A DNA stretch of 64,000 bases from Eutreptiella sp. 'Long Island Sound 2002' (taxonomy: Eukaryota; Protista; Euglenida), in NCBI GenBank assembly GCA_964036045.1, contig OZ038378.1, positions 47,926,001-47,990,000 of the forward strand, given 5' to 3'. A program made the position numbers and the translations under genes. This document shows, one piece after another, positions 1 through 34,034 of this stretch. Within the stretch, counting starts at the first letter, position 1. The number at the start of each line of letters is the position of its first letter. The notes under the pieces were generated by a model. That model was not told the origin of the DNA. It worked only from the letters and a program-made list of their open reading frames with translations, and made no database searches.

Positions 1-88
1 CAAGCAGCAGGAACCCTACATCAGCAGCAAGCAGCAGGGGAGGCACAACAAACGCACAGTGTTGAAATCACTATAAAACCTTCTGACG

Positions 89-278: not shown

Positions 279-299
279 AGGTAAAGGGACCAGTTCATC

Positions 300-400: not shown

Positions 401-429
401 CGCACACCCTAAAACACTACAAACCATAA

Positions 430-7485: not shown

Positions 7486-7494
7486 AGGGGGGGG
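7486..7494 (+). promoter_or_regulatory. Polypurine tract
   Basis: AGGGGGGGG ending 3 nt upstream of the LTR start (TGT at 7498). Confidence 0.7.
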
Positions 7495-7497
7495 TAG

Positions 7498-8475: not shown

Positions 8476-8643
8476 GGCACTTGGCTCCTGTTCACCGGTG
8501 TGCCCGCTCGGTGTGTGGTGTTGTGTGTGCTGTGTCCTTGGCCAGTTGGCTCCCGTTCACCGGTGTGCCGCTCGGTGTGTTGTGTTGTGTGTGCGGTGTC
8601 CGTGGCCTCTTGGCTCAACTTCACGGGTGTGCCCGCTCCGTGG
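8476..8643 (+). repeat. ~63-bp satellite, ~3 units
   Basis: Unit like GGTGTCCTTGGCCACTTGGCTCCTGTTCACCGGTGTGCCCGCTCGGTGTGTTGTGTTG; same family as 10775-11143. Confidence 0.85.
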
Positions 8644-9083
8644 GTTTCGTTATCTGTTCAGTGGCCTTTTTTGAGGCATGGCGGTCCCCCGCCGAAGAAA
8701 CACAAAACATTGCTCCCATGCGAGGTTCACCGACGGACAGCCGCATATGTACAAAAAGAAGTTTAAACCTGCCCAAGGTGCTAAGCACTTTCATAACTGA
8801 AACCATGGGCTACAAGCAGGCTTTCCTAAATTTGCAATATGTGGACCTGGTGAGTGGCAATGTGGTTTTGTGCCGGATGGTCATTGAAGTTGTTTCAGTG
8901 AGAGGGAAGAAACAGTTGAGTGTGATTTTGGCGATTATTGGTGGTCAGAGGCGATGAAAAAATGGGTGACTAAAATCAAAAACAAGTATGTGAAAACACA
9001 GGAAAACCTGCAGTCGCCCTGTCCCTTGCGCAGCAACACTGGGCCAATCTAAGTGAGAAATAGTGAAGACCGACAGTGAACAA

Positions 9084-10814: not shown

Positions 10815-11143
10815 TCGGTGTATTGTCTCGTGCGTTCGGTGTCCTTGGCCACCTGGCTCCTGTCAACCGGTGTGCACGCTCGATGTGCTGTGTTTGCGGT
10901 GTCCTTGGCCACGTGGCTCCTGTTCATCGCTGTGCCCGCTCGGTGTGTTGTGTTGCATGTGCGGTGTCGGTGACCTCTTGGCTCCCGTTCACCGGTGTGC
11001 TCGCTCGGTGTGTTATGTTGTGTGTGTGGTGTCCTTGGCCACTTGGCTTCTGTTCGACGGTGTGCATGCTCGGTGTGTTGTGTTGCGTGTGCGGTGTCCT
11101 TTGGCACTTGGGTCCTGTTCACCGCTGTGCCTCTGTGGTGTGT
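10775..11143 (+). repeat. ~63-bp satellite, 6 units
   Basis: Units start near 10775, 10839, 10899, 10964, 11029 and 11094. Confidence 0.9.
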
Positions 11144-13000
11144 TTTCTGTGGTGTGCTGCGGCGTGTAGCGCTTTTGTGTGTCCGCTGTGGTTCCTATTG
11201 TGCGCCCGGGGTGCTGGCGCCCCCTAAGCATTTTTGGTGTGATGTGTGTTCCTTGGGGTGGTTGTGTTTGCTTGGCATCTGGTCCTGTGTCTTGGTTGTG
11301 GCTGGCGGCGTGCCTCTCTGGCGTGCCTCTCGGCCCCACGTTGGTGCACTGTGCCTCTTCCGGTCCGGTGGCTCTCAGTGCGTCGGTCCGCTTTCCTGTC
11401 GCCGTGGTGCCTTCCCCTACCCGGGGCGCGCGCCCTTGTATTCACTGGGCGGTTGAGCGGGGCAAGTGTAGACCGGCCGAGGACCTGGCTCATGGTGCCT
11501 GCCGCTGGCCCCTGCCGAGGCAGGGGCGCTGGGCTCGCTCCACGTCGTACCCGCTCGGGGGCCCACAATGGGGTTGTCGCTGGCGGGTCCCTCCGGCGTT
11601 GGTCTCGCGCTACGTGAGCTGCGGTGGTTTTGCGCGTGTTGACCCGGTCACTTACGCGTCCGGTTTCCTGTACTGTCCGTCTCTCGACGGGAGACTCGGC
11701 CAACACCTCACCTTGCGGGTCGCAAGACGCCACGCCCGGGTCCGCGTGTGTGTGTGTTTGTGGTTGTGTTTTCGCCCGTCCGGGCGTTGCTGCGGGGCGC
11801 GCACTCATCCATCTGGACGGCGGCTGTTTCGTAGCCGGCAGGGGCTGGGTTCGCTGCCGGGCGCGGACTCGTCCATCCGGACGGCCCCTGTTCCGTAGCC
11901 GGCAGGAGCTGGGTTCGCTGCCGGGCGCGCAGACGTCCAATGGGACAGCGGCTGGTGGGCTCTGAGTTTTGGCCGGGCTGGGCAGGCCGGTCAACCGGAC
12001 GCGCGTTGGTGCGCCTTACCGTTCCTGTTGTCATTTTCCGTTCCGGTCCCTTCGAGCTGCGTGTGCCCGTGGTGTGTTGTTGTCCTTTTTTGTTTTTTTT
12101 TCGGCAGCTCCCTTGTGTTTTGTGCTTCCGTTTTTTCCGGCCCTGGTTGCCCTTTGCCTCGGCTCTTTGTGGTCCCCCCCCCCCCGTCCTCTTTTTTTTC
12201 TTTTTTTTTGCGCCCCTCTCGTCTCGGCTTTTCCGTTGTTTCCGGCCCTGACTGCTTTCAACCTCGGCGCTTTGTGGCTGCCCGCCCCCCCATTTTTTGT
12301 CCCTTTGTTGTTTTTTTCTTTCGCCCCCGCTTTTTGCTGGGTCCCACCCCTCGCTGCCCTTGGCCTTGGCACTATTTGGCTTGGTTTCTGTTTCCTTCCT
12401 CGTCTCCGGCCTTTTGTGTGGTGTGTGCGTTCTGCGCTGGTGCGGTGCCCCCCCCCCCCCCCGGCAGCTGCTCCCCGTGTTTTGCGGCGCCCCGCGTCTT
12501 GTTCTGTGGTGCTGCGGACTGGTGTGGGCTGTGTTGTGTGGTTTTTGGTGTTTTTGTGTGCCGTGCTGTGCTGGTATGCGGGGGCCTTGCCGTGCTGGTT
12601 TGCGGGTGCCTTGCTGTTTGGTGTGCTGTCGTGTTGTGTTGTTGGTTTTGTCGCTGGGCGTCTCCCGTGGGCGCTGGCTGCGCCATTTCTGTTGGTGTCG
12701 TGCAGTGCCCTGCTGTGCCGTGCTGTTTTGTGCGGTGTTTTGTCGTGTGTCGTGCCGTCATGCCATGTGATGTTTTCTTTGGTGCTGCCTGGTCGTCTGG
12801 TCCGCCGTGTTGTGCTGCATTGTCTTGGTTGTGTCTGGTTGCCCTGCTCTGCCCTCCCCCCCCCCCTGCTGCTGCCCTTGTTGTTGGGCCTGTTGCTGTT
12901 AACTGGTCCCCTGACGTCGCCGGTTGTTGTGCTCTGTCTCCGGGTGCGGTGCTGTGTTGTGCTGCTGTGTTGCCTGTCGTGCGTGCTGCTATTGGCTGGC
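10775..13000 (+). mobile_element. Composite GT-rich non-coding element, copy 1 (satellite - conserved core - pyrimidine repeats - GT low complexity), truncated at the palindrome edge
   Basis: Same module order as 28094-33190. The core at 11268-11710 aligns with 30528-30970. Confidence 0.6.
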
Positions 13001-13671
13001 TTCACCCTTTGAAGGTTTGCGCTCTCAACGTACGTGGCAAAAGGAGGCCACAAGGGGCAACATTGATGTTTTGCAAATCATTTTGGTGCCAATCGACTCG
13101 GAAAGGTATTGGACTCAATGCTTTGGCTATGCCGTTAACCTACAATGGGCATGCTAAGGTGGCATGTTATGCGGGCTAAGATCCAAGCTAGCATGTTAAG
13201 CGGGCAAACTGACTAAACTCGGTGACATGTATCAAAATCTGAAGACTTCAGAACTCCGGCCTACCACCTCAAAATTGAATAATCCGAAAGTCAAATCAAT
13301 GATTTTTTGGACGTTGTGCACAATGTTGGCATCTAAAGTTGGGCACTTTGCAGCAAACTGCCAAAAGTTGAGGATACAAACGACCGATCCGTAAATCGCG
13401 CCCTTTTGCACATAGTGATTTCACAGGTGTATTCATTCTTTATGAATTTCCCCACAACAATGCATGCAGATCGATTTCTGCTGGCCGAAATCGAAGTCGC
13501 AAAATCCGCCAGATGCTGGGCGCCGCGAGCATGCGCAACGCCCGGCATCTTGCGCAATTTGTGATTTCGATTTCTGCCACCTGAAATCGATCTGAATGCA
13601 TTGGTGTGTGGAAATTTACAAAGATTGACACACCTGTGAAATCATTGTGCGCGAAACAGCGCGAGTTAGGG
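13001..13671 (+). repeat. Module A, outer copy (left-truncated; intact mirror at 33191-34034)
   Basis: Direct repeat of 18945-19610, containing an internal ~245-bp imperfect palindrome. Confidence 0.85.
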
Positions 13672-16600
13672 ATAGAGAATGAAATAAAAAGATAAGAAAA
13701 ACGCGACGAAAAAATTTTCTAAATAGCTGAAAATAAAGCTAATTACCATAAAAAACGGCTAGGACAAAAAGCGCGCAGCGAAACGCGTTAAAACACGATG
13801 ACGAAAATTGTGAGCTTAAATAGACAAATAAATAGCGCCGTAAGCGCCGTAACGTTAATAGGAACATAACGCCGTGCCCCTTGTCCCATAATACGGCGTC
13901 TAGGCAAAGAAAACTGCGTCGCGAGCAACGCGTAAAACTCGAAATTTTTTTTCGTAACGCGCCGCACCCCTGCACTCGCTTCCGCACGCCCTCTTTTTTT
14001 CACCATGTACCTCTCCCTCCCGCTGGTGCTCCACCCTCAGCGCCTTTACTTCCTCTTCGCTGCAGCCGGACATTACATGCCGTCAAGACCACGACCACCA
14101 AATTCAACTACAACTTCAAGTATGGGAAAAAGACTTTGGAGTACTTTCAACAACGACAACACGGAGGCCGACGGGTAACACGTAAGTCATTGAGTTGAAT
14201 GTGGTGTTGGTGCTCGCGCGTGGGTTGCGTAGAGTATAATTTTAACTTTTTTTCAAACGGAAAATCATTTTTACGGGTTTTACAGGAAGTTTTTTAGGGG
14301 AAACAGACAACCAGCGCCACAAGCAAGGCAAAAAAAAAGGAAAAAAAGACGACAGGGCACCACAGCACAGCACCACACGGCAGCACAGCGCCACAGGACA
14401 CAACACAGGGGAACAGGACACCGCAGGGGAGACGCCGAGCCACGGGAGACGCGGCCGGACACGGACACCAAGGCCAACACACACCACCAAACGACAACAC
14501 GAGGCAACCAGAGCCACCAGCGGACCCCCAAAAACACACACCGATACCAGGAACCAACAGCACCAAGCACCAGAAACAGCGCAGACCATGCGGACAGCAC
14601 AACACAAGGGCATCAACACAGCGCAGCGCAGCACCGCACAGGGCGCAGAGGACAGGGAACGCACAGCACGGGACCCCAGAACACACACAACAGACACCCA
14701 GCGGCAGAAAACAAACAACAGGCACAGGCCAAGACGCAAAAAAACAGCAGAGCACGACAGCACACCACCACACGACAGCACAGCGCCACAGAACACAACA
14801 CAGGGCAGCGGAACACCAAGGCACACCACACCAAACCACAGGGCGGCGAGCCACGCGGCCGGACAGGGACAGCACCACCAAAACACGACACCAGGACCCA
14901 CTAAAAGGCAACAGAGGACAGCCAGGCCCAACAGGAAACACCAAAACACGACGGGCAACACCACACAACACCAGCCAGCGCCAGAGGGGCGAGAGAGCAC
15001 CGCACAAAGAGCAACGACAGGGACAGCACCACCGAAGCAGACACCAGCACACCCCACAGCCCAGGACACACACGCGAGCCCCGCACCGCACCACCGGCAA
15101 GGCACAGACGAGGAAAAAAAAAAAGCAAAAAACAAACAGGAAGGAAAAAACAACAGGGGGGGGGGGCGGGGGCGACAACAAGGCGCCAAGGCCCAAGGCA
15201 CCCCGAGCCGGAACACACGGAACGCCAGGGACAACGGGGGCGCAAAAAAAAAAAGCCAGGGGAGGGAAAAAAAAAACAAAAAGGACGGAGGAAAGGCAGA
15301 AAAAAAAAGAAAAGGGGGAAGAGGGGGAGACAAGAAGACGCCAAGGCCCAAGGCACCCCGGGCCGGAAATCACGGAGCGCAAGAGACAACGGGGGCGCAC
15401 AAAGAGAAAAAAGCAAAAAAAAAGGCAGGGGAGGAGGAACAAAAGGAGCGAGGAAAAGCAGGAAAAAAAAGGGGGGGGAGGGAGGGGGAGACAAGAAAAC
15501 GCCAAGGCCCAAGGCACCCCGGGCCGGAAAACACGGAACGCCAGAGACAAGGGGGGCACACAAGGGGAAAAAAAAAGGGGGACGGAAAAAAAAGGGGGGG
15601 GGTGGGGGGCAAGACACCAAGAGCGGGCAGCCCGGGCCCGAAAACAAGGAGCGCCGGAGACAACCAGGGCGCATACAAAGAAAAAAAGGGCGACCCCAGC
15701 CCGGAGGGGGCCCAGCAAACAAAGAGCGCAGCAAGACCGGCCACAGGAAAAGGTGAGACGCACCACAACGCGCCCGGGAGGCCGGCCCGCCCGACCCGGC
15801 CAAGAGGGACACCCACACGCACACACGCACGGGACCCGGGCGTGGCGTCCTCCGACCCGAAAGGGGCGCTGTTGGCGTCAACACGAAACAGCCCCGGTGC
15901 ACCGGCCGAGTCCCTCGTCGAAAGAGGGACGGTACGGGAAACCGGACGCGTCAGTGACCAGGTCCACACACGCCAACCACCGCAGCGCACGCAGCCCAAG
16001 ACCGACGCTGGAGGGACCCGCCAGGGACAACCCCATCGCGGGGCCCCGAACGGGTACGACGCGGAGCGAGCCCAGCGCCGCTCCCAGGGGCCAGCGGCAG
16101 GCACAAAGAGCCCGGTTCTCGGCCGGCCTCCGCGTGCCCCGCGCAGCCATCCAGTAAAGCCGGGGGCGCAAGCCCACGGGCTGGGGAACGGCACCACGGC
16201 GTCGGGAAAGTCGACCGGAGCACCGAGAGCGACCGGACCGGACGAGGAGCGGCGCACCAAAGCGGGAACACCAGGCACGCCAGAGAGGCTCGCTGCCGGC
16301 CACAACTAAGGCACACGGACAGGTGCCAAGCAACAACGGCCACCGGGTGCCGCAAACCCGGGCAGCGCGCACAACACGCAACGAACCACGGCACAGGGAA
16401 AGGTGCCACGCAACACCAAACCCACACACCACGATGCCCAGCCAGGAGTGGCGGGGCACAAGCGGAGCGCGCACACAAGCACACACACACCCCGCCACCC
16501 CAGCCAGGGTTGGCGGGGCGCAGCCGAAACCCGAGCCCAAGCACAGACACCCACACCACACACCCCAGCCAGGACCGGTGAGGTACAAGCGGAGAGCGCA

Positions 16601-18770
16601 CACAAACATGCAAGCACCCTGACGCCCCAGCCAGGAGTGGCGGGGCGCAGCCGAAACCCGAGCCCAAGCACGCACACCCACACCGCACACCCCAGCCAGG
16701 AGTGGCAGGGTACAAGCGGAGCAAGCACACAAACACACACACACACACGCCAACACCCCAGCCAGGAGAGGCGGGGCGCAGCGGAAACCAGAGCCCAAGC
16801 ACACCCACCCACACCGCGCACTGCAGCCAGGAGTGGCGGGGTACAAGCGGAGCAAGCACACAAACACACACACACACCCCAACACCCAAGCCAGGAGTGG
16901 CGGGGCGCAGCCGAAACCTGAGCCCAGGCACGCACACCCACACCGCACACCCCACCCAGGAGTGGCGGGGCACAAGCGGAGCGCCCACACAAGCACACAC
17001 ACACCCCAACACCCCAGCCAGGAGTGGCGGGGCGCAGCCGAAACCCGAGCCCAAGCACACGCACCAACGCCGCACACCCCAGCCAGGAGGGGCGGTGTAC
17101 AAGCGGAGCGCGCACACAAACACACACCGGCCCCAACACCTCAGCCAGGAGTGGCGGGGCGCAGCTGAAACACGAGCCCAAGCAAATAGACCCACACCGC
17201 ACACCCCAGCCAGGAGTGGCGGGGTACAAGCGGAGCGCGCACACAAACACGCACACCCCAACACCCTAGCCAGGAAAGGCGGGGAGCAGCCACAACCCGA
17301 GCCCAAAAACACACGCCCACACCGCACACCCCAGCCAGGAGTGGCAGGGCAGAAGCGGAGCGCGCACCAAGCACACACACACCCCAACACCCGAGCCAGG
17401 AGTGGCGGGGCGCAGCCGAAACCCGAGCCCAAGCACAATCATCCAAGCCGCACACCCCAGCCAGGAGTGGCGGGGTGCAAGCGGAGCGCGCACACAAGCA
17501 CACACAGCCCAACACCCCAGCCAGGAGTGGCGGGGTGCAAGCAGAGCGCGCACACAAGCACACACAGGCCAACACCCCAGCCAGGAGTGGCGGGGCGCAG
17601 CTGAAACCCGAGCGCCACCACACGCACCCACACCGCACAACTGAGACACGAGTGCCATGGTACAAGCGGAGTGCGCACACAAACACACACACACCCCAAC
17701 ACCCCAGCCAGGAGTGGCGGGGCGCAGCCGAAACCTGAGCCCAAGCACACACACCCACATTGCACACCCCAGCAAGGAGTGGCGGGGTACAAGCGGAGCG
17801 CGCACACAAGCACACACACACCCCAACACCCCGGCCAGGAGTGGCGGGGCGCAGCCGAAACCCGAGCCCAAGCACGCACACCCACACCGCACACCCCAGC
17901 CAGGAGTGGCGGGGTACAAGCGGAGCGCACACACAAGCACACACGGGCCCCAACAGCCCAGCCAGGAGTTGCGGGGCGCAGCCGAGACCCGAGCCCAAGC
18001 ACACACACCCACATCGTACACCCCAGCCAGGAGTGGCGGGGTACAAGCGGAGCGCGCACACAAACACACACAGGCCCCAACACCCCAGCCAGGAGTGGCG
18101 GGGCGCAGCCGAAACCCGAGCCCAAGCACACACACCCACACCGTACACCCCAGCCAGGAGTGGCGGGGTACAAGCGGAGCGCGAACGCAACCACGCACAC
18201 ACCCCATCACCCCAGCCAGGAGTGGCGGGGCGCAGCCGAAACCCGAGCCCAACTACAACCCTGACCCAAACACAAGCGCCACATAACAGTAGGAAACCCG
18301 GTGTCCATAGCCCGGGCACTGAGGCAGCCCGTGCCATGCAGGTGACCCGGCCAAACGAGATCCGGAGACCGGGAATAAGGCTGCATCCTAAGGCCTGCGC
18401 TGCTTTGGGACTCGAGGCGGAGCGTGCAACACCCAAGCGCCTCGGAACCCCAGTATCAAGAACATGCATGCATGCCTTGGGAACGGGATACGCCAGGAAG
18501 TCCGGTGAACCTCTAGGGTTCCGCCCAAAGGAGGGGACGTGCGCAAGCACGGGGGCACACCCTCCCCGCAAGACACGCAGGTCACGCTGGCGGCGATCAG
18601 CCCTCCTGGTGTTGCCCGGGGCCGCTTTGTTGGGGGCCACCAGTCAGGTCTAGCGGGACGTAAGCCGCCTCCCCTCTTCATGCGCGGAGCCTCTTCCTGT
18701 TCGTCACAGGGGCGACGCCAGGGGGAACCATGGGGCGCCTCTCCACGACCGAGTGCACCTACCTACCTCT
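13672..18770 (-). mobile_element. Composite GT/CA-rich non-coding element, copy 2 (5.1 kb)
   Basis: Unique head, dimeric satellite, conserved core, four GCGTTCCGTG..TTCCGGCCCGGGGTGCCTTGGGCCTTGGCG-type units, GT low complexity and a ~600-bp tail. It is bounded by module A on both sides. Confidence 0.65.
16436..18250 (-). repeat. Higher-order satellite: 29 monomers of ~63 bp alternating A/B around a conserved CCCCGCCACTCCTGGCTGGGG core
   Basis: The core recurs about every 63 bp. Downstream segments alternate between TACAAGCGGAGCG (A) and CGCAGCCGAAACCCGAG (B), with one A-A doublet at 17460/17519. Confidence 0.92.
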
Positions 18771-19820
18771 AATGTAACAGCGGATGCTTATTGTACTATC
18801 TATTGTTGCTCAATCTTTTTGGCAAGGGGGCCCTTTGCCCCCGCGCCCCCAACCCTTGGCGCGTGGTGTCCACAACATCTGAAGGCTACGATGTTGTCCG
18901 AAATAAGACACCTCGACAACGGTTCGAAGTGAAGAAAGTTCATGCTTTGAAGGTTTGTGCTCTCAACGTACGTGGCAAAAGGAGGCCACAAGGGGCAACA
19001 TTGATGTTTTGCAAGTCATTTTGGTGCCAATCGACTCGGAACGGTATTGGACTCAATCCTTTGGCTATGCCGTTAACCTACAATGGGCATGCTAAGGTGG
19101 CATGTTATGCGGGCTAAGATCTAAGCTAGCATGTTAAGCGGGCAAACTGACTAAACACGGTGACATGTATCGAAATCCGAAGAATTCAGAACTCCGGCCT
19201 ACCACCTCAAAATTGAATAATCCGAAAGTCAAATCAATGTATTTTTGGACGTTGTGCACAATGTTGGCATCCAAGGTTGGGCACTTTGCAGCAAGCTGCC
19301 AAACGTTGAGGATACAAACGACCGATCCGTAAATCGCGTCCTTTTGCACATAGTGATTTCACAGGTGTATTCATTATTTTGAATTTCCACACAACAATGC
19401 ATGCAGATTGATTTCTGGTGGCCGAAATCGAAGTCGCAAAATACGCCAGATGCCGGGCGCCGCAAGCATGCGCAATGCCCGGCATCTTGCGCAATTTGTG
19501 ATTTCGATTTCTGCCACCTGAAATCGATCTGAATGCATTGGTGTGTGGAAATTTACAAAGATTGACACACCTGTGAAATCATTGTGCGCGAAACAGCACG
19601 AGTTAGGGATTGGCGTGGCGTATCCTCCATTTCGGCAGCTTGCTGTAAGTGCCCAAGTTTGGATGCCGTAATTGTGCGCAAGGTGGTACGCTACATTGAT
19701 TGAACTATCTTGGCATTCCAATTGTTGCTTGATGGCATGGCTAAAGCATTGATCCCAATATCTTTCGGAGTGGATGTGCAGTAAAATGACTCGCAAAACA
19801 TCAATGTTGCCCCCTATGGC
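18771..19820 (+). mobile_element. Module A, full copy: MITE/foldback-like non-coding element
   Basis: ~100-bp imperfect inverted repeats (18992-19085 vs 19725-19818, AGGGGCAACATTGATGTTTTGC) enclose a second ~245-bp palindrome (19345-19590). Confidence 0.7.
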
Positions 19821-20906
19821 ATCCTGTTTCCACTTAGGTGGACAGCCCAACGGTTGGAAAATTAAACTGTCTCCACTTCACACCTTCACCAAGGTGTCAT
19901 ATTCTGCACAACATCTTGGCCTACAGATGTTGTAGACAAGAAGTGCCAAAGCTCGGGAGCAAAGAGGCTGAAGGCCTCCTTGCAAGAAAGGAAGGGCAAC
20001 AATAGATGCTAAAATCTGTTTTTCTAAGTACATTACAACCCATATGTAACCATTAGCTTGTGTATCTTCATTTAAAAGGTTTTCTTGAGTAACCGATGGC
20101 GGGGTAAGTGTGCCTATCTTTTGGGCAACTATTGTGTCCCCATGTGTGCCTATACTTACCTATAATTTCAGCAAAGGTACCAATCCTTTGGGCAGAATAA
20201 AACTGGTTTACCCGGATACATTGGAACATATGTGCAACTATCGGTTTGCATATTTCTTTTTCAAATTCTTCTTTGACAACCCGTTTGTTGTCCTCTGCTC
20301 CACAAGCCGAAGGCCGTTTAATTTGCTCCCATGAACGGATTGAGACTTTTATATATATATATATATATACTTATATATATACACACAAAATAAACATTGC
20401 AGCACGCGCATGCACGCGGCAGGCATCTGCCGTATTTTACAGTTTTGATTTCTGCCACCAAAAACAGATTTCAATGCATTGCTGTCTAAGGCCTTCTAAA
20501 GATCAATAGCGCGCCCCTCACCCCAATACAACCAGAAATGGTTTCCGGTTTGCCGACACTTGTGCTTGTTTCTTGTATTTGTCAAAGAAAACCTTGCTGA
20601 TTTTCCGCAATGCAAAATGAAGTCCACACAGAGCTAAAGTAGAGCAAGTCCAGGCACCGGAGCAAAATGAACTCAGGATAAATCCTTCGGGGTCATAACA
20701 TGTCTAACAAAGAAGGGCTGCACAAAGACAATGCAGCCTTAAACACAATGCTTCAGTGAAATATGAACAAAACAAATGATCTTATAAAGTAAAATGGCAG
20801 TATTTTGGCCACCAAGATAGTCCCAAGCACTTCTAGGCACTCCCCCTTACATCCATTCCTCGCATGCGGGGAATCATGAATTGGCTAAGTATGTGAACAA
20901 ATTTGG

Positions 20907-22006
20907 ATGTCCTCGAAGGCAGTTACTGAAAGCGACGCCAGCGGCAACTAGGGTCATTTCTCATCATCCGCATTTCACTGTCTGGAGCCATCGGCCGCAG
21001 AATCTGATAACTCAAAAATCGCCGCCCACCTGCAAAGCTCCCACCCCTCAGGCCCGGTTCAACGGCCGGAGAATTACATTGACGCTGCTTCTGCTACGTT
21101 AAAGATCGCCGTCGCCCAGCATCTCGAGTTACAATGTCTTCTGTCACAAATAGATCAGTTCCCCAGAACCCTACGTTTTCTTGTCACGGCTCCCGCAACA
21201 GGACTCTACCATGCCTGCACTCCCTCCCCTACTCGGGAAGAGCCGCTGCCGTCTACAACCTGCCTAACACAGATTCACGCTCCAAAGCAGAAGTCTCCAA
21301 AGCCGTGTAGGGATCACTACGCTGAAGGAAACAATGACAATTGGGCCCCACGACCCTCAGTGAAGCAAGTCCGTGTGCCAGACGCTGCCCCGGCATTTCT
21401 CACTACCAACCTTCCCTTTTTGATCGTCTGTCTCTGTATACTCATCTCGCGTCTTCACCGTGCAATGTACCATTCGTTCCATCCTACAACGCCGCTACGG
21501 CGTATGGGCCAGAAGGGCTGCTCCCATCGCAAATGCCGCGTACGACGGAAGGGACTGACGCGGCGAAGTCTACTCTCTACCGGTTTTCTACAAGCCTACT
21601 GCCAAAGACAAACTCGGCTGATCCCTCAGCAGATTTGATCCCGCACTACGCGCTAGGCAACCTGCACGCTGTAGGATAGGGGTAGGAAGAACACCGACGA
21701 GCTGTGGATAGCTGCTGAAGCTTTAAGTTTTTCCTGGGCGCTTGGCACCGCACAGTCGTGCGGCAGTTTTCTGTGTTCGGCAACAAGAGGACGAAAGTAT
21801 GTCGGGTTTGCGAGTTCTTCCGGGCGAACCAGCTGACTTATTTCTGCAAACACGTCTCAATGACGAACACTCTGACCGATCGGCAGTGCGGCTGTGGGTT
21901 TATCAACTTTGAACGAAGACTCGAATGCCTGCAGTGCACTAAACTGAAGCTTCGAGCTGAAGCCCTTGCGCACGATAACGAAGGAGCGAGGTGTCTAATC
22001 AAGTGA
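20907..22006 (+). pseudogene. Decayed ORF ending in a RanBP2-type zinc finger
   Basis: A stop-free frame from ~20955 to 21638, then a frameshifted segment with stops, ending DRQCGCGFINFERRLECLQC (W-x-C-x-C-x3-NF-xx-R-xx-C-xx-C with W replaced by R). Confidence 0.55.
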
Positions 22007-23346
22007 CACAGTTTCTGCTTTTATTTACCATATTGCGCTACTGAGTGTGCCTATATTTCTGTCATCAATACAAAGAAGACTTTGCGTGAATGTGCAAAAC
22101 AGATCACACACCAGTGACCCCAGGGTCGCGGACCAATGTCCGTTTCGGCATTTCTTCGTCGTGTTCCTCTTCTCGCTTGCGTCCTCTTCCTCTCTTCTGA
22201 GCTGTGCTCACAATACTCAACATGGCCTGTACCCAACGCCATGATTGTCACTGTCGTGACAGCGACTTGAGGTACACCCCGCTATATGGCTGCCTCTCGC
22301 TTCTTGGCGACGCCTTGGCGCCGCTCTTGAACTGCAGTGATGAAGGCAACAGTCACAGTACCTCAATCCGCACATGTAGCTCGCTGCACTGCTTGAAGCC
22401 TGTTGTTCTTTTCCCCTAGGGGTGAAACAGCAAAGTGTTTGAAACAGCGCCGTAGGCAGCAAATTGTCCAGCCAGCCCCGACACTGATCTGACACCAACA
22501 CGGTTATGCCAAACACACCCACACACAACACACACAGCTGCTTTTTGGGCACACAATCTACTGAGCACACCGCTAACAGATCATGACACATACTCTCCAA
22601 ACCACATTCCCAGCACGGCAACCTTCTCTGGCTCGTGGCACGTCCCAGAGACCCACGTTACTGTCAGTCAAAAGTTTACTTCAAAGTCGTCAACATAACT
22701 GTCACATCTCAATATTCTGTCACGTCCACAGTATGCCATTCATCTTTCCAGAGCCCTCTACGGAAGCCTCGAACATTGAGCTCTTGCTTCACCTAACTGC
22801 TTCTCTGCTTCCTGGGCTTTCATTTAGAAACCTCCAGAAGCTTTCAATCTCTTTTTCATGAGGTACTCTAGACTCAGGGTTTTCATTACTGCATTAAGCA
22901 AGATCCAGTAAGTCCTAGTCCTCACATCTTTCAAGTCCCAACCACACCCTGAAACAATGAACACACCCACAGTTTACTGCAAAGATAGCCACCCTCTAAA
23001 GGGCTAGGGTTTTTCCCGAAACAGTGACACACACTGTGTGCCTCCCAGGGTACAGCCCCCCAGGATCCCCAGGTATAACTCAGGCCCCTCCCACACATGC
23101 GAGGGTCCTCCCTATCTTACCCAGCTGTATCACTCACGGGCCCGCCAGCAAAACAAGACCATGGGGTTCGCCCGACCAACTACCACCCATTGTAGCAACC
23201 ACCATTTCCTCCTACCCCTCGCAACATCCCCTCTTCACCTCTCAAACCACACACAGCCCATGCAGCGCAGGCAGCACATATAGTATTCTATAAGGCCCAA
23301 GGGCCATGTGTGGAGTACTCTGTGTGTTTTCTTACCCCGAACTGCC

Positions 23347-23511
23347 TAAAAAGATAACAAAAGCACGCCCAAAAAACTTACTAAATAGCTGAAACTAAAG
23401 CTAATTAGCATAAACATCGCCGGAGAAGAAATTTGCGGCGATGTTTATGCTAATTAGCTTTAGTTTCAGCTATTTAGTAAGTTTTTTGGGCGTGCTTTTG
23501 TTATCTTTTTA
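23347..23511. other. Palindrome centre formed within a terminus of the composite-element family
   Basis: TAAAAAGATAACAAAAGCACGCCCAAAAAACTTACTAAATAGCTGAAACTAAAGCTAATTAGCATAAA (23347) aligns with TAAAAAGATAAGAAAAACGCGACGAAAAAATTTTCTAAATAGCTGAAAATAAAGCTAATTACCATAAA (13685). Confidence 0.85.
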
Positions 23512-24851
23512 GGCAGTTCGGGGTAAGAAAACACACAGAGTACTCCACACATGGCCCTTGGGCCTTATAGAATACTATATGTGCTGCCTGCGCTGCATGG
23601 GCTGTGTGTGGTTTGAGAGGTGAAGAGGGGATGTTGCGAGGGGTAGGAGGAAATGGTGGTTGCTACAATGGGTGGTAGTTGGTCGGGCGAACCCCATGGT
23701 CTTGTTTTGCTGGCGGGCCCGTGAGTGATAAAGCTGGGTAAGATAGGGAGGACCCTCGCATGTGTGGGAGGGGCCTGAGTTATACCTGGTGATCCTGGGG
23801 GGCTGTACCCTGGGAGGCACACAGTGTGTGTCACTGTTTCGGGAAAAACCCTAGCCCTTTAGAGGGTGGCTATCTTTGCAGTAAACTGTGGGTGTGTTCA
23901 TTGTTTCAGGGTGTGGTTGGGACCTGAAAGATGTGAGGACTAGGACTTACTGGATCTTGCTTAATGCAGTAATGAAAACCCTGAGTCTAGAGTACCTCAT
24001 GAAAAAGAGATTGAAAGCTTCTGGAGGTTTCTAAATGAAAGCCCAGGAAGCAGAGAAGCAGTTAGGTGAAGCAAGAGCTCAATGTTCGAGGCTTCCGTAG
24101 AGGGCTCTGGAAAGATGAATGGCATACTGTGGACGTGACAGAATATTGAGATGTGACAGTTATGTTGACGACTTTGAAGTAAACTTTTGACTGACAGTAA
24201 CGTGGGTCTCTGGGACGTGCCACGAGCCAGAGAAGGTTGCCGTGCTGGGAATGTGGTTTGGAGAGTATGTGTCATGATCTGTTAGCGGTGTGCTCAGTAG
24301 ATTGTGTGCCCAAAAAGCAGCTGTGTGTGTTGTGTGTGGGTGTGTTTGGCATAACCGTGTTGGTGTCAGATCAGTGTCGGGGCTGGCTGGACAATTTGCT
24401 GCCTACGGCGCTGTTTCAAACACTTTGCTGTTTCACCCCTAGGGGAAAAGAACAACAGGCTTCAAGCAGTGCAGCGAGCTACATGTGCGGATTGAGGTAC
24501 TGTGACTGTTGCCTTCATCACTGCAGTTCAAGAGCGGCGCCAAGGCGTCGCCAAGAAGCGAGAGGCAGCCATATAGCGGGGTGTACCTCAAGTCGCTGTC
24601 ACGACAGTGACAATCATGGCGTTGGGTACAGGCCATGTTGAGTATTGTGAGCACAGCTCAGAAGAGAGGAAGAGGACGCAAGCGAGAAGAGGAACACGAC
24701 GAAGAAATGCCGAAACGGACATTGGTCCGCGACCCTGGGGTCACTGGTGTGTGATCTGTTTTGCACATTCACGCAAAGTCTTCTTTGTATTGATGACAGA
24801 AATATAGGCACACTCAGTAGCGCAATATGGTAAATAAAAGCAGAAACTGTG

Positions 24852-25951
24852 TCACTTGATTGGACACCTCGCTCCTTCGTTATCGTGCGCAAGGGCTTCA
24901 GCTCGAAGCTTCAGTTTAGTGCACTGCAGGCATTCGAGTCTTCGTTCAAAGTTGATAAACCCACAGCCGCACTGCCGATCGGTCAGAGTGTTCGTCATTG
25001 AGACGTGTTTGCAGAAATAAGTCAGCTGGTTCGCCCGGAAGAACTCGCAAACCCGACATACTTTCGTCCTCTTGTTGCCGAACACAGAAAACTGCCGCAC
25101 GACTGTGCGGTGCCAAGCGCCCAGGAAAAACTTAAAGCTTCAGCAGCTATCCACAGCTCGTCGGTGTTCTTCCTACCCCTATCCTACAGCGTGCAGGTTG
25201 CCTAGCGCGTAGTGCGGGATCAAATCTGCTGAGGGATCAGCCGAGTTTGTCTTTGGCAGTAGGCTTGTAGAAAACCGGTAGAGAGTAGACTTCGCCGCGT
25301 CAGTCCCTTCCGTCGTACGCGGCATTTGCGATGGGAGCAGCCCTTCTGGCGCATACGCCGTAGCGGCGTTGTAGGATGGAACGAATGGTACATTGCACGG
25401 TGAAGACGCGAGATGAGTATACAGAGACAGACGATCAAAAAGGGAAGGTTGGTAGTGAGAAATGCCGGGGCAGCGTCTGGCACACGGACTTGCTTCACTG
25501 AGGGTCGTGGGGCCCAATTGTCATTGTTTCCTTCAGCGTAGTGATCCCTACACGGCTTTGGAGACTTCTGCTTTGGAGCGTGAATCTGTGTTAGGCAGGT
25601 TGTAGACGGCAGCGGCTCTTCCCGAGTAGGGGAGGGAGTGCAGGCATGGTAGAGTCCTGTTGCGGGAGCCGTGACAAGAAAACGTAGGGTTCTGGGGAAC
25701 TGATCTATTTGTGACAGAAGACATTGTAACTCGAGATGCTGGGCGACGGCGATCTTTAACGTAGCAGAAGCAGCGTCAATGTAATTCTCCGGCCGTTGAA
25801 CCGGGCCTGAGGGGTGGGAGCTTTGCAGGTGGGCGGCGATTTTTGAGTTATCAGATTCTGCGGCCGATGGCTCCAGACAGTGAAATGCGGATGATGAGAA
25901 ATGACCCTAGTTGCCGCTGGCGTCGCTTTCAGTAACTGCCTTCGAGGACAT
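24852..25951 (-). pseudogene. Mirror copy of the RanBP2-zinc-finger pseudogene
   Basis: Reverse complement of 20907-22006 with a few substitutions. Confidence 0.55.
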
Positions 25952-27039
25952 CCAAATTTGTTCACATACTTAGCCAATTCATGATTCCCCGCATGCGAGG
26001 AATGGATGTAAGGGGGAGTGCCTAGAAGTGCTTGGGACTATCTTGGTGGCCAAAATACTGCCATTTTACTTTATAAGATCATTTGTTTTGTTCATATTTC
26101 ACTGAAGCATTGTGTTTAAGGCTGCATTGTCTTTGTGCAGCCCTTCTTTGTTAGACATGTTATGACCCCGAAGGATTTATCCTGAGTTCATTTTGCTCCG
26201 GTGCCTGGACTTGCTCTACTTTAGCTCTGTGTGGACTTTATTTTGCATTGCGGAAAATCAGCAAGGTTTTCTTTGACAAATACAAGAAACAAGCACAAGT
26301 GTCGGCAAACCGGAAACCATTTCTGGTTGTATTGGGGTGAGGGGCGCGCTATTGATCTTTAGAAGGCCTTAGACAGCAATGCATTGAAATCTGTTTTTGG
26401 TGGCAGAAATCAAAACTGTAAAATACGGCAGATGCCTGCCGCGTGCATGCGCGTGCTGCAATGTTTATTTTGTGTGTATATATATAAGTATATATATATA
26501 TATATATATAAAAGTCTCAATCCGTTCATGGGAGCAAATTAAACGGCCTTCGGCTTGTGGAGCAGAGGAAAAACAAACGGGTTGTCAAAGAAGAATTTGA
26601 AAAAGAAATATGCAAACCGATAGTTGCACATATGTTCCAATGTATCCGGGTAAACCAGTTTTATTCTGCCCAAAGGATTGGTACCTTTGCTGAAATTATA
26701 GGTAAGTATAGGCACACATGGGGACACAATAGTTGCCCAAAAGATAGGCACACTTACCCCGCCATCGGTTACTCAAGAAAACCTTTTAAATGAAGATACA
26801 CAAGCTAATGGTTACATATGGGTTGTAATGTACTTAGAAAAACACATTTTAGCATCTATTGTTGCCCTTCCTTTCTTGCAAGGAGGCCTTCAGCCTCTTT
26901 GCTCCCGAGCTTTGGCACTTCTTGTCTACAACATCTGTAGGCCAAGATGTTGTGCAGAATATGACACCTTGGTGAAGGTGTGAAGTGGAGACAGTTTAAT
27001 TTTCCAACCGTTGGGCTGTCCACCTAAGTGGAAACAGGA

Positions 27040-28093
27040 TGCCATAGGGGGCAACATTGATGTTTTGCGAGTCATTTTACTGCACATCCACTCCGAAAGA
27101 TATTGGGATCAATGCTTTAGCCATGCCATCAAGCAACAATTGGAATGCCAAGATAGTTCAATCAATGTAGCGTACCACTTTGCGCACAATTACGGCATCC
27201 AAACTTGGGCACTTACAGCAAGCTGCCGAAATGGAGGATACGCCACGCCAATCCCTAACTCGTGCTGTTTCGCGCACAATGATTTCACAGGTGTGTCAAT
27301 CTTTGTAAATTTCCACACACCAATGCATTCAGATCGATTTCAGGTGGCAGAAATCGAAATCACAAATTGCGCAAGATGCCGGGCGTTGCGCATGCTTGCG
27401 GCGCCCGGCATCTGGCGTATTTTGCGACTTCGATTTCGGCCACCAGAAATCAATCTGCATGCATTGTTGTGTGGAAATTCAAAATAATGAATACACCTGT
27501 GAAATCACTATGTGCAAAAGGACGCGATTTACGGATCGGTCGTTTGTATCCTCAACGTTTGGCAGCTTGCTGCAAAGTGCCCAACCTTGGATGCCAACAT
27601 TGTGCACAACGTCCAAAAATACATTGATTTGACTTTCGGATTATTCAATTTTGAGGTGGTAGGCCGGAGTTCTGAATTCTTCGGATTTCGATACATGTCA
27701 CCGAGTTTAGTCAGTTTGCCCGCTTAACATGCTAGCTTAGATCTTAGCCCGCATAACATGCCACCTTAGCATGCCCATTGTAGGTTAACGGCATAGCCAA
27801 AGGATTGAGTCCAATACCGTTCCGAGTCGATTGGCACCAAAATGACTTGCAAAACATCAATGTTGCCCCTTGTGGCCTCCTTTTGCCACGTACGTTGAGA
27901 GCACAAACCTTCAAAGCATGAACTTTCTTCACTTCGAACCGTTGTCGAGGTGTCTTATTTCGGACAACATCGTAGCCTTCAGATGTTGTGGACACCACGC
28001 GCCAAGGGTTGGGGGCGCGGGGGCAAAGGGCCCCCTTGCCAAAAAGATTGAGCAACAATAGATAGTACAATAAGCATCCGCTGTTACATTAGA
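27040..28093 (-). mobile_element. Mirror copy of full module A
   Basis: Reverse complement of 18771-19820. Confidence 0.7.
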
Positions 28094-31000
28094 GGTAGGT
28101 AGGTGCACTCGGTCGTGGAGAGGCGCCCCATGGTTCCCCCTGGCGTCGCCCCTGTGACGAACAGGAAGAGGCTCCGCGCATGAAGAGGGGAGGCGGCTTA
28201 CGTCCCGCTAGACCTGACTGGTGGCCCCCAACAAAGCGGCCCCGGGCAACACCAGGAGGGCTGATCGCCGCCAGCGTGACCTGCGTGTCTTGTGGGGAGG
28301 GTGTGCCCCCGTGCTTGCGCACGTCCCCTCCTTTGGGCGGAACCCTAGAGGTTCACCGGACTTCCTGGCGTATCCCGTTCCCAAGGCATGCATGCATGTT
28401 CTTGATACTGGGGTTCCGAGGCGCTTGGGTGTCGCACGCTCCGCCTCGAGTCCCAAAGCAGCGCAGGCCTTAGGATGCAGCCTTATTCCCGGTCTCCGGA
28501 TCTCGTTTGGCCGGGTCACCTGCATGGCACGGGCTGCCTCAGTGCCCGGGCTATGGACACCGGGTTTCCTACTGTTATGTGGCGCTTGTGTTTGGGTCAG
28601 GGTTGTAGTTGGGCTCGGGTTTCGGCTGCGCCCCGCCACTCCTGGCTGGGGTGATGGGGTGTGTGCGTGGTTGCGTTCGCGCTCCGCTTGTACCCCGCCA
28701 CTCCTGGCTGGGGTGTACGGTGTGGGTCTGTGTGCTTGGGCTCGGGTTTCGGCTGCGCCCCGCCACTCCTGGCTGGGGTGTTGGGGCCTGTGTGTGTTTG
28801 TGTGCGCGCTCCGCTTGTACCCCGCCACTCCTGGCTGGGGTGTACGATGTGGGGGTGTGTGCTTGGGCTCGGGTCTCGGCTGCGCCCCGCAACTCCTGGC
28901 TGGGCTGTTGGGGCCCGTGTGTGCTTGTGTGTGCGCTCCGCTTGTACCCCGCCACTCCTGGCTGGGGTGTGCGGTGTGGGTGTGCGTGCTTGGGCTCGGG
29001 TTTCGGCTGCGCCCCGCCACTCCTGGCCGGGGTGTTGGGGTGTGTGTGTGCTTGTGTGCGCGCTCCGCTTGTACCCCGCCACTCCTTGCTGGGGTGTGCA
29101 ATGTGGGTGTGTGTGCTTGGGCTCGGGTTTCGGCTGCGCCCCGCCACTCCTGGCTGGGGTGTTGGGGTGTGTGTGTGTTTGTGTGCGCACTCCGCTTGTA
29201 CCATGGCACTCGTGTCTCAGTTGTGCGGTGTGGGTGCGTGTGGTGGCGCTCGGGTTTCAGCTGCGCCCCGCCACTCCTGGCTGGGGTGTTGGCCTGTGTG
29301 TGCTTGTGTGCGCGCTCTGCTTGCACCCCGCCACTCCTGGCTGGGGTGTTGGGCTGTGTGTGCTTGTGTGCGCGCTCCGCTTGCACCCCGCCACTCCTGG
29401 CTGGGGTGTGCGGCTTGGATGATTGTGCTTGGGCTCGGGTTTCGGCTGCGCCCCGCCACTCCTGGCTCGGGTGTTGGGGTGTGTGTGTGCTTGGTGCGCG
29501 CTCCGCTTGTGCCCTGCCACTCCTGGCTGGGGTGTGCGGTGTGGGCGTGTGTTTTTGGGCTCGGGTTGTGGCTGCTCCCCGCCTTTCCTGGCTAGGGTGT
29601 TGGGGTGTGCGTGTTTGTGTGCGCGCTCCGCTTGTACCCCGCCACTCCTGGCTGGGGTGTGCGGTGTGGGTCTATTTGCTTGGGCTCGTGTTTCAGCTGC
29701 GCCCCGCCACTCCTGGCTGAGGTGTTGGGGCCGGTGTGTGTTTGTGTGCGCGCTCCGCTTGTACACCGCCCCTCCTGGCTGGGGTGTGCGGCGTTGGTGC
29801 GTGTGCTTGGGCTCGGGTTTCGGCTGCGCCCCGCCACTCCTGGCTGGGGTGTTGGGGTGTGTGTGTGCTTGTGTGGGCGCTCCGCTTGTGCCCCGCCACT
29901 CCTGGGTGGGGTGTGCGGTGTGGGTGTGCGTGCTTGGGCTCAGGTTTCGGCTGCGCCCCGCCACTCCTGGCTTGGGTGTTGGGGTGTGTGTGTGTGTTTG
30001 TGTGCTTGCTCCGCTTGTACCCCGCCACTCCTGGCTGCAGTGCGCGGTGTGGGTGGGTGTGCTTGGGCTCTGGTTTCCGCTGCGCCCCGCCTCTCCTGGC
30101 TGGGGTGTTGGCGTGTGTGTGTGTGTGTTTGTGTGCTTGCTCCGCTTGTACCCTGCCACTCCTGGCTGGGGTGTGCGGTGTGGGTGTGCGTGCTTGGGCT
30201 CGGGTTTCGGCTGCGCCCCGCCACTCCTGGCTGGGGCGTCAGGGTGCTTGCATGTTTGTGTGCGCTCTCCGCTTGTACCTCACCGGTCCTGGCTGGGGTG
30301 TGTGGTGTGGGTGTCTGTGCTTGGGCTCGGGTTTCGGCTGCGCCCCGCCAACCCTGGCTGGGGTGGCGGGGTGTGTGTGTGCTTGTGTGCGCGCTCCGCT
30401 TGTGCCCCGCCACTCCTGGCTGGGCATCGTGGTGTGTGGGTTTGGTGTTGCGTGGCACCTTTCCCTGTGCCGTGGTTCGTTGCGTGTTGTGCGCGCTGCC
30501 CGGGTTTGCGGCACCCGGTGGCCGTTGTTGCTTGGCACCTGTCCGTGTGCCTTAGTTGTGGCCGGCAGCGTGCCTCTCTGGCGTGCCTGGTGTTCCCGCT
30601 TTGGTGCGCCGCTCCTCGTCCGGTCCGGTCGCTCTCGGTGCTCCGGTCGACTTTCCCGACGCCGTGGTGCCGTTCCCCACCCCGTGGGCTTGCGCCCCCG
30701 GCTTTACTGGATGGCTGCGCGGGGCACGCGGAGGCCGGCCGAGAACCGGGCTCTTTGTGCCTGCCGGTGGCCCCTGGGAGCGGCGCTGGGCTCGCTCCGC
30801 GTCGTACCCGTTCGGGGCCCCGCGATGGGGTTGTCCCTGGCGGGTCCCTCCAGCGTCAGTCTTGGGCTGCGTGCGCTGCGGTGGTTGGCGTGTGTGGACC
30901 CGGTCACTGACGCGTCCGGTTTCCCGTACCGTCCCTCTGTCGACGAGGGACTCGGCCGGTGCACCGGGGCTGTTTCGTGTTGACGCCAACAGCGCCCCTT

Positions 31001-33190
31001 TCGGGTCGGAGGACGCCACGCCCGGGTCCCGTGCGTGTGTGCGTGTGGGTGTCCCTCTTGGCCGGGTCGGGCGGGCCGGCCTCCCGGGCGCGTTGTGGTG
31101 CGTCTCACCTTTTCCTGTGGCCGGTCTTGCTGCGCTCTTTGTTTGCTGGGCCCGCTCCGGGCTGGGGTCGCCCTTTTTTTCTTTGTATGCGCCCTGGTTG
31201 TCTTCGGCGCTCCTTGTTTTCGGGCCCGGGCTGCCCGCTCTTGGTGTCTTGCCCCCCACCCCCCCCCTTTTTTTTTCCGTCCCCCTTTTTTTTTCCCCTT
31301 GTGTGCCCCCCTTGTCTCTGGCGTTCCGTGTTTTCCGGCCCGGGGTGCCTTGGGCCTTGGCGTTTTCTTGTCTCCCCCTCCCTCCCCCCCCTTTTTTTTC
31401 CTGCTTTTCCTCGCTCCTTTTGTTCCTCCTCCCCTGCCTTTTTTTTTTTTGCTTTTTTCTCTTTGTGCGCCCCCGTTGTCTCTTGCGTTCCGTGATTTCC
31501 GGCCCGGGGTGCCTTGGGCCTTGGCGTCTTCTTGTCTCCCCCTCTTCCCCCTTTTCTTTTTTTTTCTGCCTTTCCTCCGTCCTTTTTGTTTTTTTTTCCC
31601 TCCCCTGGCTTTTTTTTTTTGCGCCCCCGTTGTCCCTGGCGTTCCGTGTGTTCCGGCTCGGGGTGCCTTGGGCCTTGGCGCCTTGTTGTCGCCCCCGCCC
31701 CCCCCCCCCTGTTGTTTTTTCCTTCCTGTTTGTTTTTTGCTTTTTTTTTTTCCTCGTCTGTGCCTTGCCGGTGGTGCGGTGCGGGGCTCGCGTGTGTGTC
31801 CTGGGCTGTGGGGTGTGCTGGTGTCTGCTTCGGTGGTGCTGTCCCTGTCGTTGCTCTTTGTGCGGTGCTCTCTCGCCCCTCTGGCGCTGGCTGGTGTTGT
31901 GTGGTGTTGCCCGTCGTGTTTTGGTGTTTCCTGTAGGGCCTGGCTGTCCTCTGTTGCCTTTTAGTGGGTCCTGGTGTCGTGTTTCGGTGGTGCTGTCCCT
32001 GTCCGGCCGCGTGGCTCGCCGCCCTGTGGTTTGGTGTGGTGTGCCTTGGTGTTCCGCTGCCCTGTGTTGTGTTCTGTGGCGCTGTGCTGTCGTGTGGTGG
32101 TGTGCTGTCGTGCTCTGCTGTTTTTTTGCGTCTTGGCCTGTGCCTGTTGTTTGTTTTCTGCCGCTGGGTGTCTGTTGTGTGTGTTCTGGGGTCCCGTGCT
32201 GTGCGTTCCCTGTCCTCTGCGCCCTGTGCGGTGCTGCGCTGCGCTGTGTTGATGCCCTTGTGTTGTGCTGTCCGCATGGTCTGCGCTGTTTCTGGTGCTT
32301 GGTGCTGTTGGTTCCTGGTATCGGTGTGTGTTTTTGGGGGTCCGCTGGTGGCTCTGGTTGCCTCGTGTTGTCGTTTGGTGGTGTGTGTTGGCCTTGGTGT
32401 CCGTGTCCGGCCGCGTCTCCCGTGGCTCGGCGTCTCCCCTGCGGTGTCCTGTTCCCCTGTGTTGTGTCCTGTGGCGCTGTGCTGCCGTGTGGTGCTGTGC
32501 TGTGGTGCCCTGTCGTCTTTTTTTCCTTTTTTTTGCCTTGCTTGTGGCGCTGGTTGTCTGTTTCCCCTAAAAAACTTCCTGTAAAACCCGTAAAAATGAT
32601 TTTCCGTTTGAAAAAAAGTTAAAATTATACTCTACGCAACCCACGCGCGAGCACCAACACCACATTCAACTCAATGACTTACGTGTTACCCGTCGGCCTC
32701 CGTGTTGTCGTTGTTGAAAGTACTCCAAAGTCTTTTTCCCATACTTGAAGTTGTAGTTGAATTTGGTGGTCGTGGTCTTGACGGCATGTAATGTCCGGCT
32801 GCAGCGAAGAGGAAGTAAAGGCGCTGAGGGTGGAGCACCAGCGGGAGGGAGAGGTACATGGTGAAAAAAAGAGGGCGTGCGGAAGCGAGTGCAGGGGTGC
32901 GGCGCGTTACGAAAAAAATTTTCGAGTTTTACGCGTTGCTCGCGACGCAGTTTTCTTTGCCTAGACGCCGTATTATGGGACAAGGGGCACGGCGTTATGT
33001 TCCTATTAACGTTACGGCGCTTACGGCGCTATTTATTTGTCTATTTAAGCTCACAATTTTCGTCATCGTGTTTTAACGCGTTTCGCTGCGCGCTTTTTGT
33101 CCTAGCCGTTTTTTATGGTAATTAGCTTTATTTTCAGCTATTTAGAAAATTTTTTCGTCGCGTTTTTCTTATCTTTTTATTTCATTCTCT
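28094..33190 (+). mobile_element. Mirror copy of composite GT-rich element 2
   Basis: Reverse complement of 13672-18770. Confidence 0.65.
28610..30425 (+). repeat. Mirror copy of the 29-monomer dimeric satellite
   Basis: Reverse complement of 16436-18250, with the same A-A irregularity. Confidence 0.92.
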
Positions 33191-34034
33191 ATCCCTAACT
33201 CGCGCTGTTTCGCGCACAATGATTTCACAGGTGTGTCAATCTTTGTAAATTTCCACACACCGATGCATTCAGATCGATTTCAGGTGGCAGAAATCGAAAT
33301 CACAAATTGCGCAAGATGCCGGGCGTTGCGCATGCTCGCGGCGCCCAGCATCTGGCGGATTTTGCGACTTCGATTTCGGCCAGCAGAAATCGATCTGCAT
33401 GCATTGTTGTGGGGAAATTCATAAAGAATGAATACACCTGTGAAATCACTATGTGCAAAAGGGCGCGATTTACGGATCGGTCGTTTGTATCCTCAACTTT
33501 TGGCAGTTTGCTGCAAAGTGCCCAACTTTAGATGCCAACATTGTGCACAACGTCCAAAAAATCATTGATTTGACTTTCGGATTATTCAATTTTGAGGTGG
33601 TAGGCCGGAGTTCTGAAGTCTTCAGATTTTGATACATGTCACCGAGTTTAGTCAGTTTGCCCGCTTAACATGCTAGCTTGGATCTTAGCCCGCATAACAT
33701 GCCACCTTAGCATGCCCATTGTAGGTTAACGGCATAGCCAAAGCATTGAGTCCAATACCTTTCCGAGTCGATTGGCACCAAAATGATTTGCAAAACATCA
33801 ATGTTGCCCCTTGTGGCCTCCTTTTGCCACGTACGTTGAGAGCGCAAACCTTCAAAGGGTGAACTTTCTTCACTTCGAACCGTTGTCGAGGTGTCTTATT
33901 TCGGACAACATCGTGGCCTTGAGATGTTGTGGACACCACGCGCCAAGGGTTGGGGGCATGGGGGCAAAGGGCTTCCTTGCCAAAAAGATTGAGCAACAAT
34001 AGATAGTACAATAAGCATCCGCTGTTACATTAGA
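33191..34034 (-). repeat. Module A outer copy (844 bp), direct repeat of 27251-28093
   Basis: Homology runs from ATCCCTAACTCG to GTTACATTAGA in both copies, with scattered substitutions. Confidence 0.88.

Follow-up and report, generated by a model that had tools for sequence, protein, structure and literature searches.

A 10.4-kb interstitial palindrome with a 13-nt spacer at a truncated repeat copy in Eutreptiella, probably a fold-back-type or sister-fusion inverted duplication

Introduction

Yasuda and Yao are said to have described, in 1991, the programmed formation of an rDNA palindrome in Tetrahymena. The palindromes that arise from short inverted repeats in Tetrahymena and yeast have a defined and conserved inverted repeat beside a programmed break. 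The locus presented here is like these systems in that a short inverted repeat at a free end could have primed a giant palindrome; however, the repeat is conserved there, whereas the family found at the present axis is without it in all 648 copies compared, and the event is unique.

Fold-back duplications without such programming are known from yeast and from the human germline. In wild-type yeast, fold-back priming takes place at a 5-bp inverted repeat whose halves are separated by 35 bp, and Mre11 poorly cuts hairpins with loops longer than 12 nt (Al-Zain et al. 2023, PMC10622511). Human germline inverted duplications display inverted microhomology of 2–8 bp and spacers of 766–70,466 bp (Hermetz et al. 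2014, PMC3907307). The present locus is similar to the yeast and human duplications in its inverted copies, in a short single-copy spacer, possibly with a few bp of inverted complementarity at its borders, in the apparent loss of sequence past the break, and in a second junction that is either blunt or poor in homology. In contrast to the long spacers of the human cases, the spacer here measures 13 nt, and while the yeast and human cases reach the chromosome end via a dicentric, the duplication here is interstitial, 10.4 kb long and apparently rejoined to the other break end. In addition, it resides in a protist-like genome, where it is fixed or inherited and has an arm divergence of 0.3%. Sister-chromatid fusion with breakage-fusion-bridge cycles (PMC3834830) leads to the same product, namely a palindromic junction with a short spacer that is asymmetric via unequal resection; the locus differs in being a two-copy interstitial duplication with no sign of further amplification or terminal deletion.

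The window, i.e. the whole stretch of DNA analysed, comprises 64,000 nt of a 201-Mb contig of Eutreptiella sp. 'Long Island Sound 2002', and all coordinates below refer to it; genome searches covered 2.28 Gb in 2317 contigs. We consider it probable that its palindrome arose by a single inverted duplication after one break, either of the fold-back type or by sister fusion, which is a known kind of event.

The palindrome and its spacer

The axis, at 23423–23435, lies in a near-perfect palindrome and was correctly located by the initial annotation of the sequence. The left arm (13001–23422, plus strand, 10,422 nt) and the right arm (23436–33863, minus strand, 10,428 nt) surround an asymmetric 13-nt spacer, or loop, GAGAAGAAATTTG, which is bordered by CGCCG and CGGCG. 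Over 10,430 aligned columns, 13001–23422 is 99.6% complementary to 33863–23436, and the 41 differences between the arms, 31 of them substitutions and about 10 of them indel positions, are evenly spread, the one closest to the axis being 23127/23731. CGCCG and CGGCG are the innermost bases of the arms and, in the product, are indistinguishable from the remaining arm sequence.

The 29-mer that spans the loop occurs only once in the 2.28-Gb genome when up to three mismatches are allowed. Furthermore, no second copy or haplotig of the locus is present in the genome, where the only 100% matches are the two arms themselves. An ancestral or empty allele was not found, and a search of JGI metagenome contigs with the junction between the two repeat families described below gave zero matches.

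Repeat families at the axis

The sequence next to the axis belongs to a repeat, family A, with more than 430 genomic copies; an exact 15-mer of its axis motif occurs 432 times, and a genome search with 23347–23435 returned 1346 candidates, of which 28 copies were aligned. Full copies are about 5.2–5.7 kb long, start with GTCGCGCGCGCTG...CCAGAATAAAATAAAAAG, contain long arrays of 65/127-bp satellites that make up over half of the element, and end in (ACCT)n at the 3' side. Target-site duplications are 13 bp in one copy (L032) and 40 bp in another (L033), and none was seen in a third (L031), while several copies are 5'-truncated at differing points. All six frames are open across low-complexity DNA, and they contain zero Pfam matches and no reverse transcriptase or endonuclease ORF. 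Judged by these features, family A is best described as a putative non-coding retroposon of non-LTR-like type, which, if it is a retroposon, would be non-autonomous because it encodes neither reverse transcriptase nor endonuclease. Its (ACCT)n tail, variable target-site duplications and 5' truncations are shared with non-LTR retroposons that have simple-repeat tails, but it differs from them in having no reverse transcriptase/endonuclease ORF and no Pfam match and in consisting mostly of 65/127-bp satellite. In one further copy, L016 (G000:C6:102209038-102212103), the start of the element is partially duplicated in tandem, with a distance of 574 nt between two directly oriented 5' ends of family A.

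A long family A copy is resident in each arm (13674–18768, plus strand, mirrored at 28093–33188), where it contains 65/127-bp and 161-bp internal satellites and ends in (ACCT)3. It departs from the usual non-LTR pattern in being flanked on both sides by 843-bp direct repeats. The resident copy, which begins at 13674, is about 26 nt short at its own 5' end, hence 13685–13752 is not the intact element end for which it had been taken.

The arm end at the axis consists of a second, much shorter piece of family A, a 5' fragment at 23347–23422 (plus strand, element positions of about 36–110), mirrored at 23436–23511. This fragment of about 75 nt is 86.5% identical to positions 36–109 of the L031 element and 86–89% identical to other genomic copies, and its homology decays from about 23418, a few bases short of the arm end; the profile alignment of the left arm against 29 copies stops at model position 111. 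The similarity to the resident repeat that had been noted before the axis is thus borne out (23347 to about 23420 against about 13687–13760, 62 of 78 aligned columns). The axis had furthermore been placed at a broken terminus of the resident element, which is right in so far as a short 5' fragment is broken off there at its distal side. However, the motif is not a terminus, as about 60–85 nt of the 5.7-kb element precede it, and all copies proceed downstream of the motif with AGCAT AAAAAACGGCTAGGCCAAAAAGCGCGCTGCGAAACGCG... for more than 1.6 kb. Nor is the fragment a part of the resident element; it is a separate copy that abuts a truncated member of another family at 23346|23347.

This other family, family B, is a poly-A retroposon whose copy at 20860–23346 (plus strand, mirrored at 23512–25998) is without the last ~47 nt and the A-tail. 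At least 40 genomic family B copies match it with 78–86% identity, and the match stops at 23346/7; all nine copies examined go on with TTCTGCGGTCC...AAAAAA, that is, 47 more bases and an A-run, followed by a target-site duplication. The truncation point of family B coincides exactly with the start of the family A fragment, so that a family B copy truncated at its 3' end is here fused to a family A copy truncated at its 5' end. Such a fusion could have arisen either by insertion of family A into the family B tail or as a chimeric retrocopy, and a fusion of either origin would mean that family A once continued past the present axis. In the same family B copy, a 184-nt segment (21668–21851) is inverted in place with respect to nine other copies, and since this inversion is present in both arms, it is older than the palindrome.

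The spacer and the family A sequence

The initial annotation took CGCCG and CGGCG to have formed a 5-bp inverted repeat at the spacer borders before the duplication. It further proposed that the family A copy natively read CGCCG-GAGAAGAAATTTG-CGGCG, that a break just beyond this sequence allowed intrastrand fold-back priming, and that the element end may act as a hotspot of recurrent cleavage. This scenario appears unlikely, and so does its implication that the loop, rather than the usual family sequence, was native after AGCATAAA. Several features of the family do agree with it, as CGCCG is among the variants at columns 7–11 (copy L007), CGGCG is among those at columns 27–31 (11 of 29 copies), their family counterparts are 15 nt apart, as compared to 13 at the axis, and GCGGCGA is an exact family variant. 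Moreover, adding the loop and CGGCG to the arm raises the score against the 29-copy profile by 3.9 bits (from 60.3 to 64.2) and extends the alignment to model position 131, and the alignment passes through the loop in its present orientation only, the opposite orientation bringing no gain (59.5 bits).

Against this, a gain of 3.9 bits is not above chance, as it is reached by 23% of the shuffles of the loop and by 17% of those of the 18 nt, both composition-matched, as well as by 11% of random 13-mers followed by CGGCG and 6.5% of random 18-mers from the window. Within the spacer, about 7 of 13 positions agree with the family, compared to 86–89% over the preceding 74 nt, a drop for which our own binomial estimate gives p ~0.004 under equal divergence. 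Over the 34 columns that follow AGCAT, the axis copy has the majority base at 19 and a 2-nt gap, while the 28 true copies agree at 82–97%. Importantly for the proposed priming, CGCCG and CGGCG occur together in none of the 648 genomic copies fitting AGCNTAAAAAACGNNN-N(12-18)-CNGCGAAA, and the commonest sequence among the listed copies, AAAAAACGCTTAGGCCAAAAAGCGCGCTGCGAAA, is without such a 5-bp pair. With family A copies serving as a proxy for the ancestral allele, the comparison shows neither the pair nor a loop similarity above chance. The family sequence does not run through the loop, and a derivation of the loop and CGGCG from the element itself is not supported. The 13-nt spacer may be filler or diverged sequence.

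The loop also matches, at 10 of 13 positions, the S repeat sequence that spans the outer boundary of the palindrome, GTGAAGAAAG|TTC, at 33861–33873 (and likewise at 18929–18941 and 27920–27932), and the chance that one such match lands on a junction is about 1%. A loop templated from the outer junction was nevertheless rejected as a coincidence, since 20 matches of this quality occur in the window, where chance alone would give 18. About 20–45 nt downstream of the axis position, e.g. at 13765–13790, the native family A sequence abounds in small self-complementary motifs (GCGCGC, AACGCGTT and GGCTAGGCC), none of which equals the observed axis.

The suggestion that the element end generates palindromes repeatedly finds no support in the genome. 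The 12-mer core of the motif is found head-to-head within 400 nt at this locus only in the 2.28 Gb, tail-to-tail pairs of the motif are absent genome-wide, and no close inverted repeats were detected in 190 kb of other loci scanned. The event is unique among at least 432 copies of the motif, and family A has no conserved inverted repeat at the axis position. The two outcomes that the initial annotation had itself named as contrary to its scenario were both obtained: the family copies continue past the axis with a conserved sequence other than the loop, and no further palindrome is centred on the motif. There is no evidence for a transposon-encoded or sequence-specific palindrome-making site. 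A fold-back type of origin as such, which had been proposed together with the hotspot, is retained, as it best explains an inverted duplication of 10.4 kb around a spacer of 13 nt.

The outer junction and the left flank

The outer boundary of the palindrome falls within repeat S, of which the complete copy in the left arm spans 18768–19610 (plus strand, 843 bp), with further copies at 13001–13673 (truncated) and, mirrored, at 27251–28093 and 33191–34034. The S paralogues are 95.8–96.1% identical and exactly flank the resident family A copy in each arm, so arranged that this copy looks like it is bordered by an 843-bp target-site duplication, compared to 13–40 bp elsewhere. S runs 171 nt past the end of the right arm (33864–34034), where 165 of 171 positions (96.5%) are identical to the inner S copy. 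The S copy of the left arm ends abruptly at 13001 against unrelated sequence, and an alignment of the left flank with the S continuation gives 83 of 182 positions. The junction between the left flank and the inverted copy, 13000|13001, reads ...GGCTGGC|TTCACCC, compared to ...GAAGAAAG|TTCACCC in S, and is thus blunt and without microhomology. Because only the S copy of the right arm extends past the arm end, this arm, which is contiguous with its own flank, is likely to be the original and the left arm, with its outermost S cut at 13001, the inverted copy. The orientation of the loop is uninformative on this question because a switch at the axis can flip the loop. The outer S copies have one mismatch in 673 nt, as opposed to about 4% between S paralogues, and this near-identity argues against a boundary set by recombination between diverged S paralogues.

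The left flank also contains a fragmentary family A copy (8454–13000, minus strand), which runs in the sense of the right-arm fragment and keeps collinearity with that fragment. Here, 11268–11778 corresponds to family A positions 2721–3259, 12087–12221 to 2182–2328, and 12201–12321 to positions 1449–1579 of the resident copy, while 12300–13000 is about 60% similar to the CA-rich, low-complexity part of family A at about 570–1500, in the family A sense only. The order along the flank is therefore satellites, 3259–2721, 2328–2182, position ~1450 at 12321, and then CA-rich A-like sequence up to 13000. With moderate confidence, the left flank and the right-arm fragment may be regarded as one family A copy that was split by the duplication with a loss of about 600 nt. 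The region is locally rich in family A, and the left-flank copy could be independent. Between the satellite blocks of this copy lies an intronless ORF of 576 aa (9084–10814, minus strand) with a weak match to a treble-clef zinc finger (PF13451, E = 2.7e-5); it was dismissed as a family A gene, being absent from the other family A copies examined.

The alternative in which the palindrome was once longer and either arm is the original bears directly on this flank. A later deletion or insertion in the left arm would then have made the 13000|13001 junction, and the left-flank family A copy would be unrelated to the axis fragment. Such a history agrees with the weakness of the family A similarity near 13000, with other insertions in the left flank (the ORF at 9084–10814 and a retrotransposon further left), and with the missing family B tail: the 47-nt tail, which would be expected past the far end of the family A copy in the left flank, was found neither in the window nor in the 20 kb before it, i.e. 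not within 33 kb upstream. However, it needs a second event, it leaves the sense and the order of the left-flank family A sequence to coincidence, and no mirror image of the right flank is present in 1–13000, where a longer palindrome might have left its trace. We regard this history as quite improbable.

Origin by a single inverted duplication

A single inverted duplication would account for both junctions as follows. The original locus would correspond to the right arm, with family B fused to family A and family A extending leftwards. A break inside, or a few bases past, positions ~105–125 of this family A copy would have created a free end, which then either snapped back on itself or fused with the sister chromatid, and the 13 nt at 23423–23435 would have remained single-copy. 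The approximately 10.4 kb up to 33863, ending within S, would have been copied in inverted orientation, and a joint free of microhomology would have connected the new end to the other broken end at 13000, which probably belonged to the same family A copy. The data show the structure itself, its junction in the reads, the asymmetry of the arms at S, the identities of families A and B and the uniqueness of the event, and from this arrangement we infer that a break took place, in what order the steps followed, that the left flank was once continuous, and how old the event is. The locus combines inverted copies around a short spacer, a junction seen in reads, one arm that lies in its original flank and a second junction far from the axis, as is characteristic of fold-back duplications. 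Twin-priming during retroposition and hairpins made by a transposase were discarded, given the 10 kb of unrelated DNA in the arms and the 13-nt spacer at the centre.

Read support

Logan contigs from four public runs (X4, X5, X6 and X8, of which X5 and X8 are shallow) were placed on 21400–25460. An exact 73-nt contig (23393–23465), in which 30 nt of arm flank the 13-nt spacer on either side, is present in X4 and X6, the two of which represent one sample, possibly the assembled one. In a 31-mer graph, a hairpin loop yields a contig of precisely this 30+13+30 type. The depth of the spacer contig is 3 compared to 7.3 for the arms in X4 and 10.4 compared to 25.7 in X6, about 0.4 times the arm depth, which approaches the ratio of 1:2 to be expected when all arm copies are part of a palindrome. 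Loose contig ends at 23414 belong to other copies of the repeat, as they show one mismatch and then the usual family sequence, and no perfect-match contig leaves the arm into a different sequence. The spacer is without adapter sequence and without a GATC ligation site.

In X8, which carries another organism label and comes from another study, there are pieces identical to the family B copy at 22524–22721 and 24336–24775. The organism labels of X8 and of the other runs may denote the same or very close strains.

Fold-back chimeras are frequent in long-read data, and a chimeric read of this kind could have turned the assembler back, perhaps onto the other haplotype, with the 0.3% difference between the arms reflecting heterozygosity and with the runs that contain the junction deriving from the assembled sample; yet such an assembly or library artefact is highly improbable, as the 31-mers crossing the spacer reach depths of 3 and 10.4 in two runs, in proportion to the arms, the spacer contains neither adapter nor GATC site, and the outer boundary is a clean junction within a repeat with flanks that differ on the two sides. 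The junction is thus not confined to a single molecule, nor are the arms identical, given the depth in two runs and the 41 arm differences. The palindrome is real, with the proviso that contigs cannot show single molecules with both long arms.

Significance

To return to a single inverted duplication as the preferred origin, the arms are 0.3% apart, and the event is not brand new unless this difference is due to haplotypes or assembly noise. If the 31 substitutions are real, a 10.4-kb palindrome with a 13-nt spacer was carried through many generations, a proposition that we put forward tentatively and with considerable doubt. If true, it would suggest either an unusual tolerance of long palindromes, with weak hairpin or cruciform processing, or gene conversion from arm to arm that keeps such palindromes in existence.

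Natural, sequence-resolved large palindromes in which both junctions can be read help to judge fold-back duplication outside yeast and cancer cells, and the present locus serves this purpose with an interstitial copy of 10.4 kb, a spacer of 13 nt and an outer junction that is blunt. Its practical value lies mainly in providing a checked case, in which read data confirm a palindrome of a long-read assembly.
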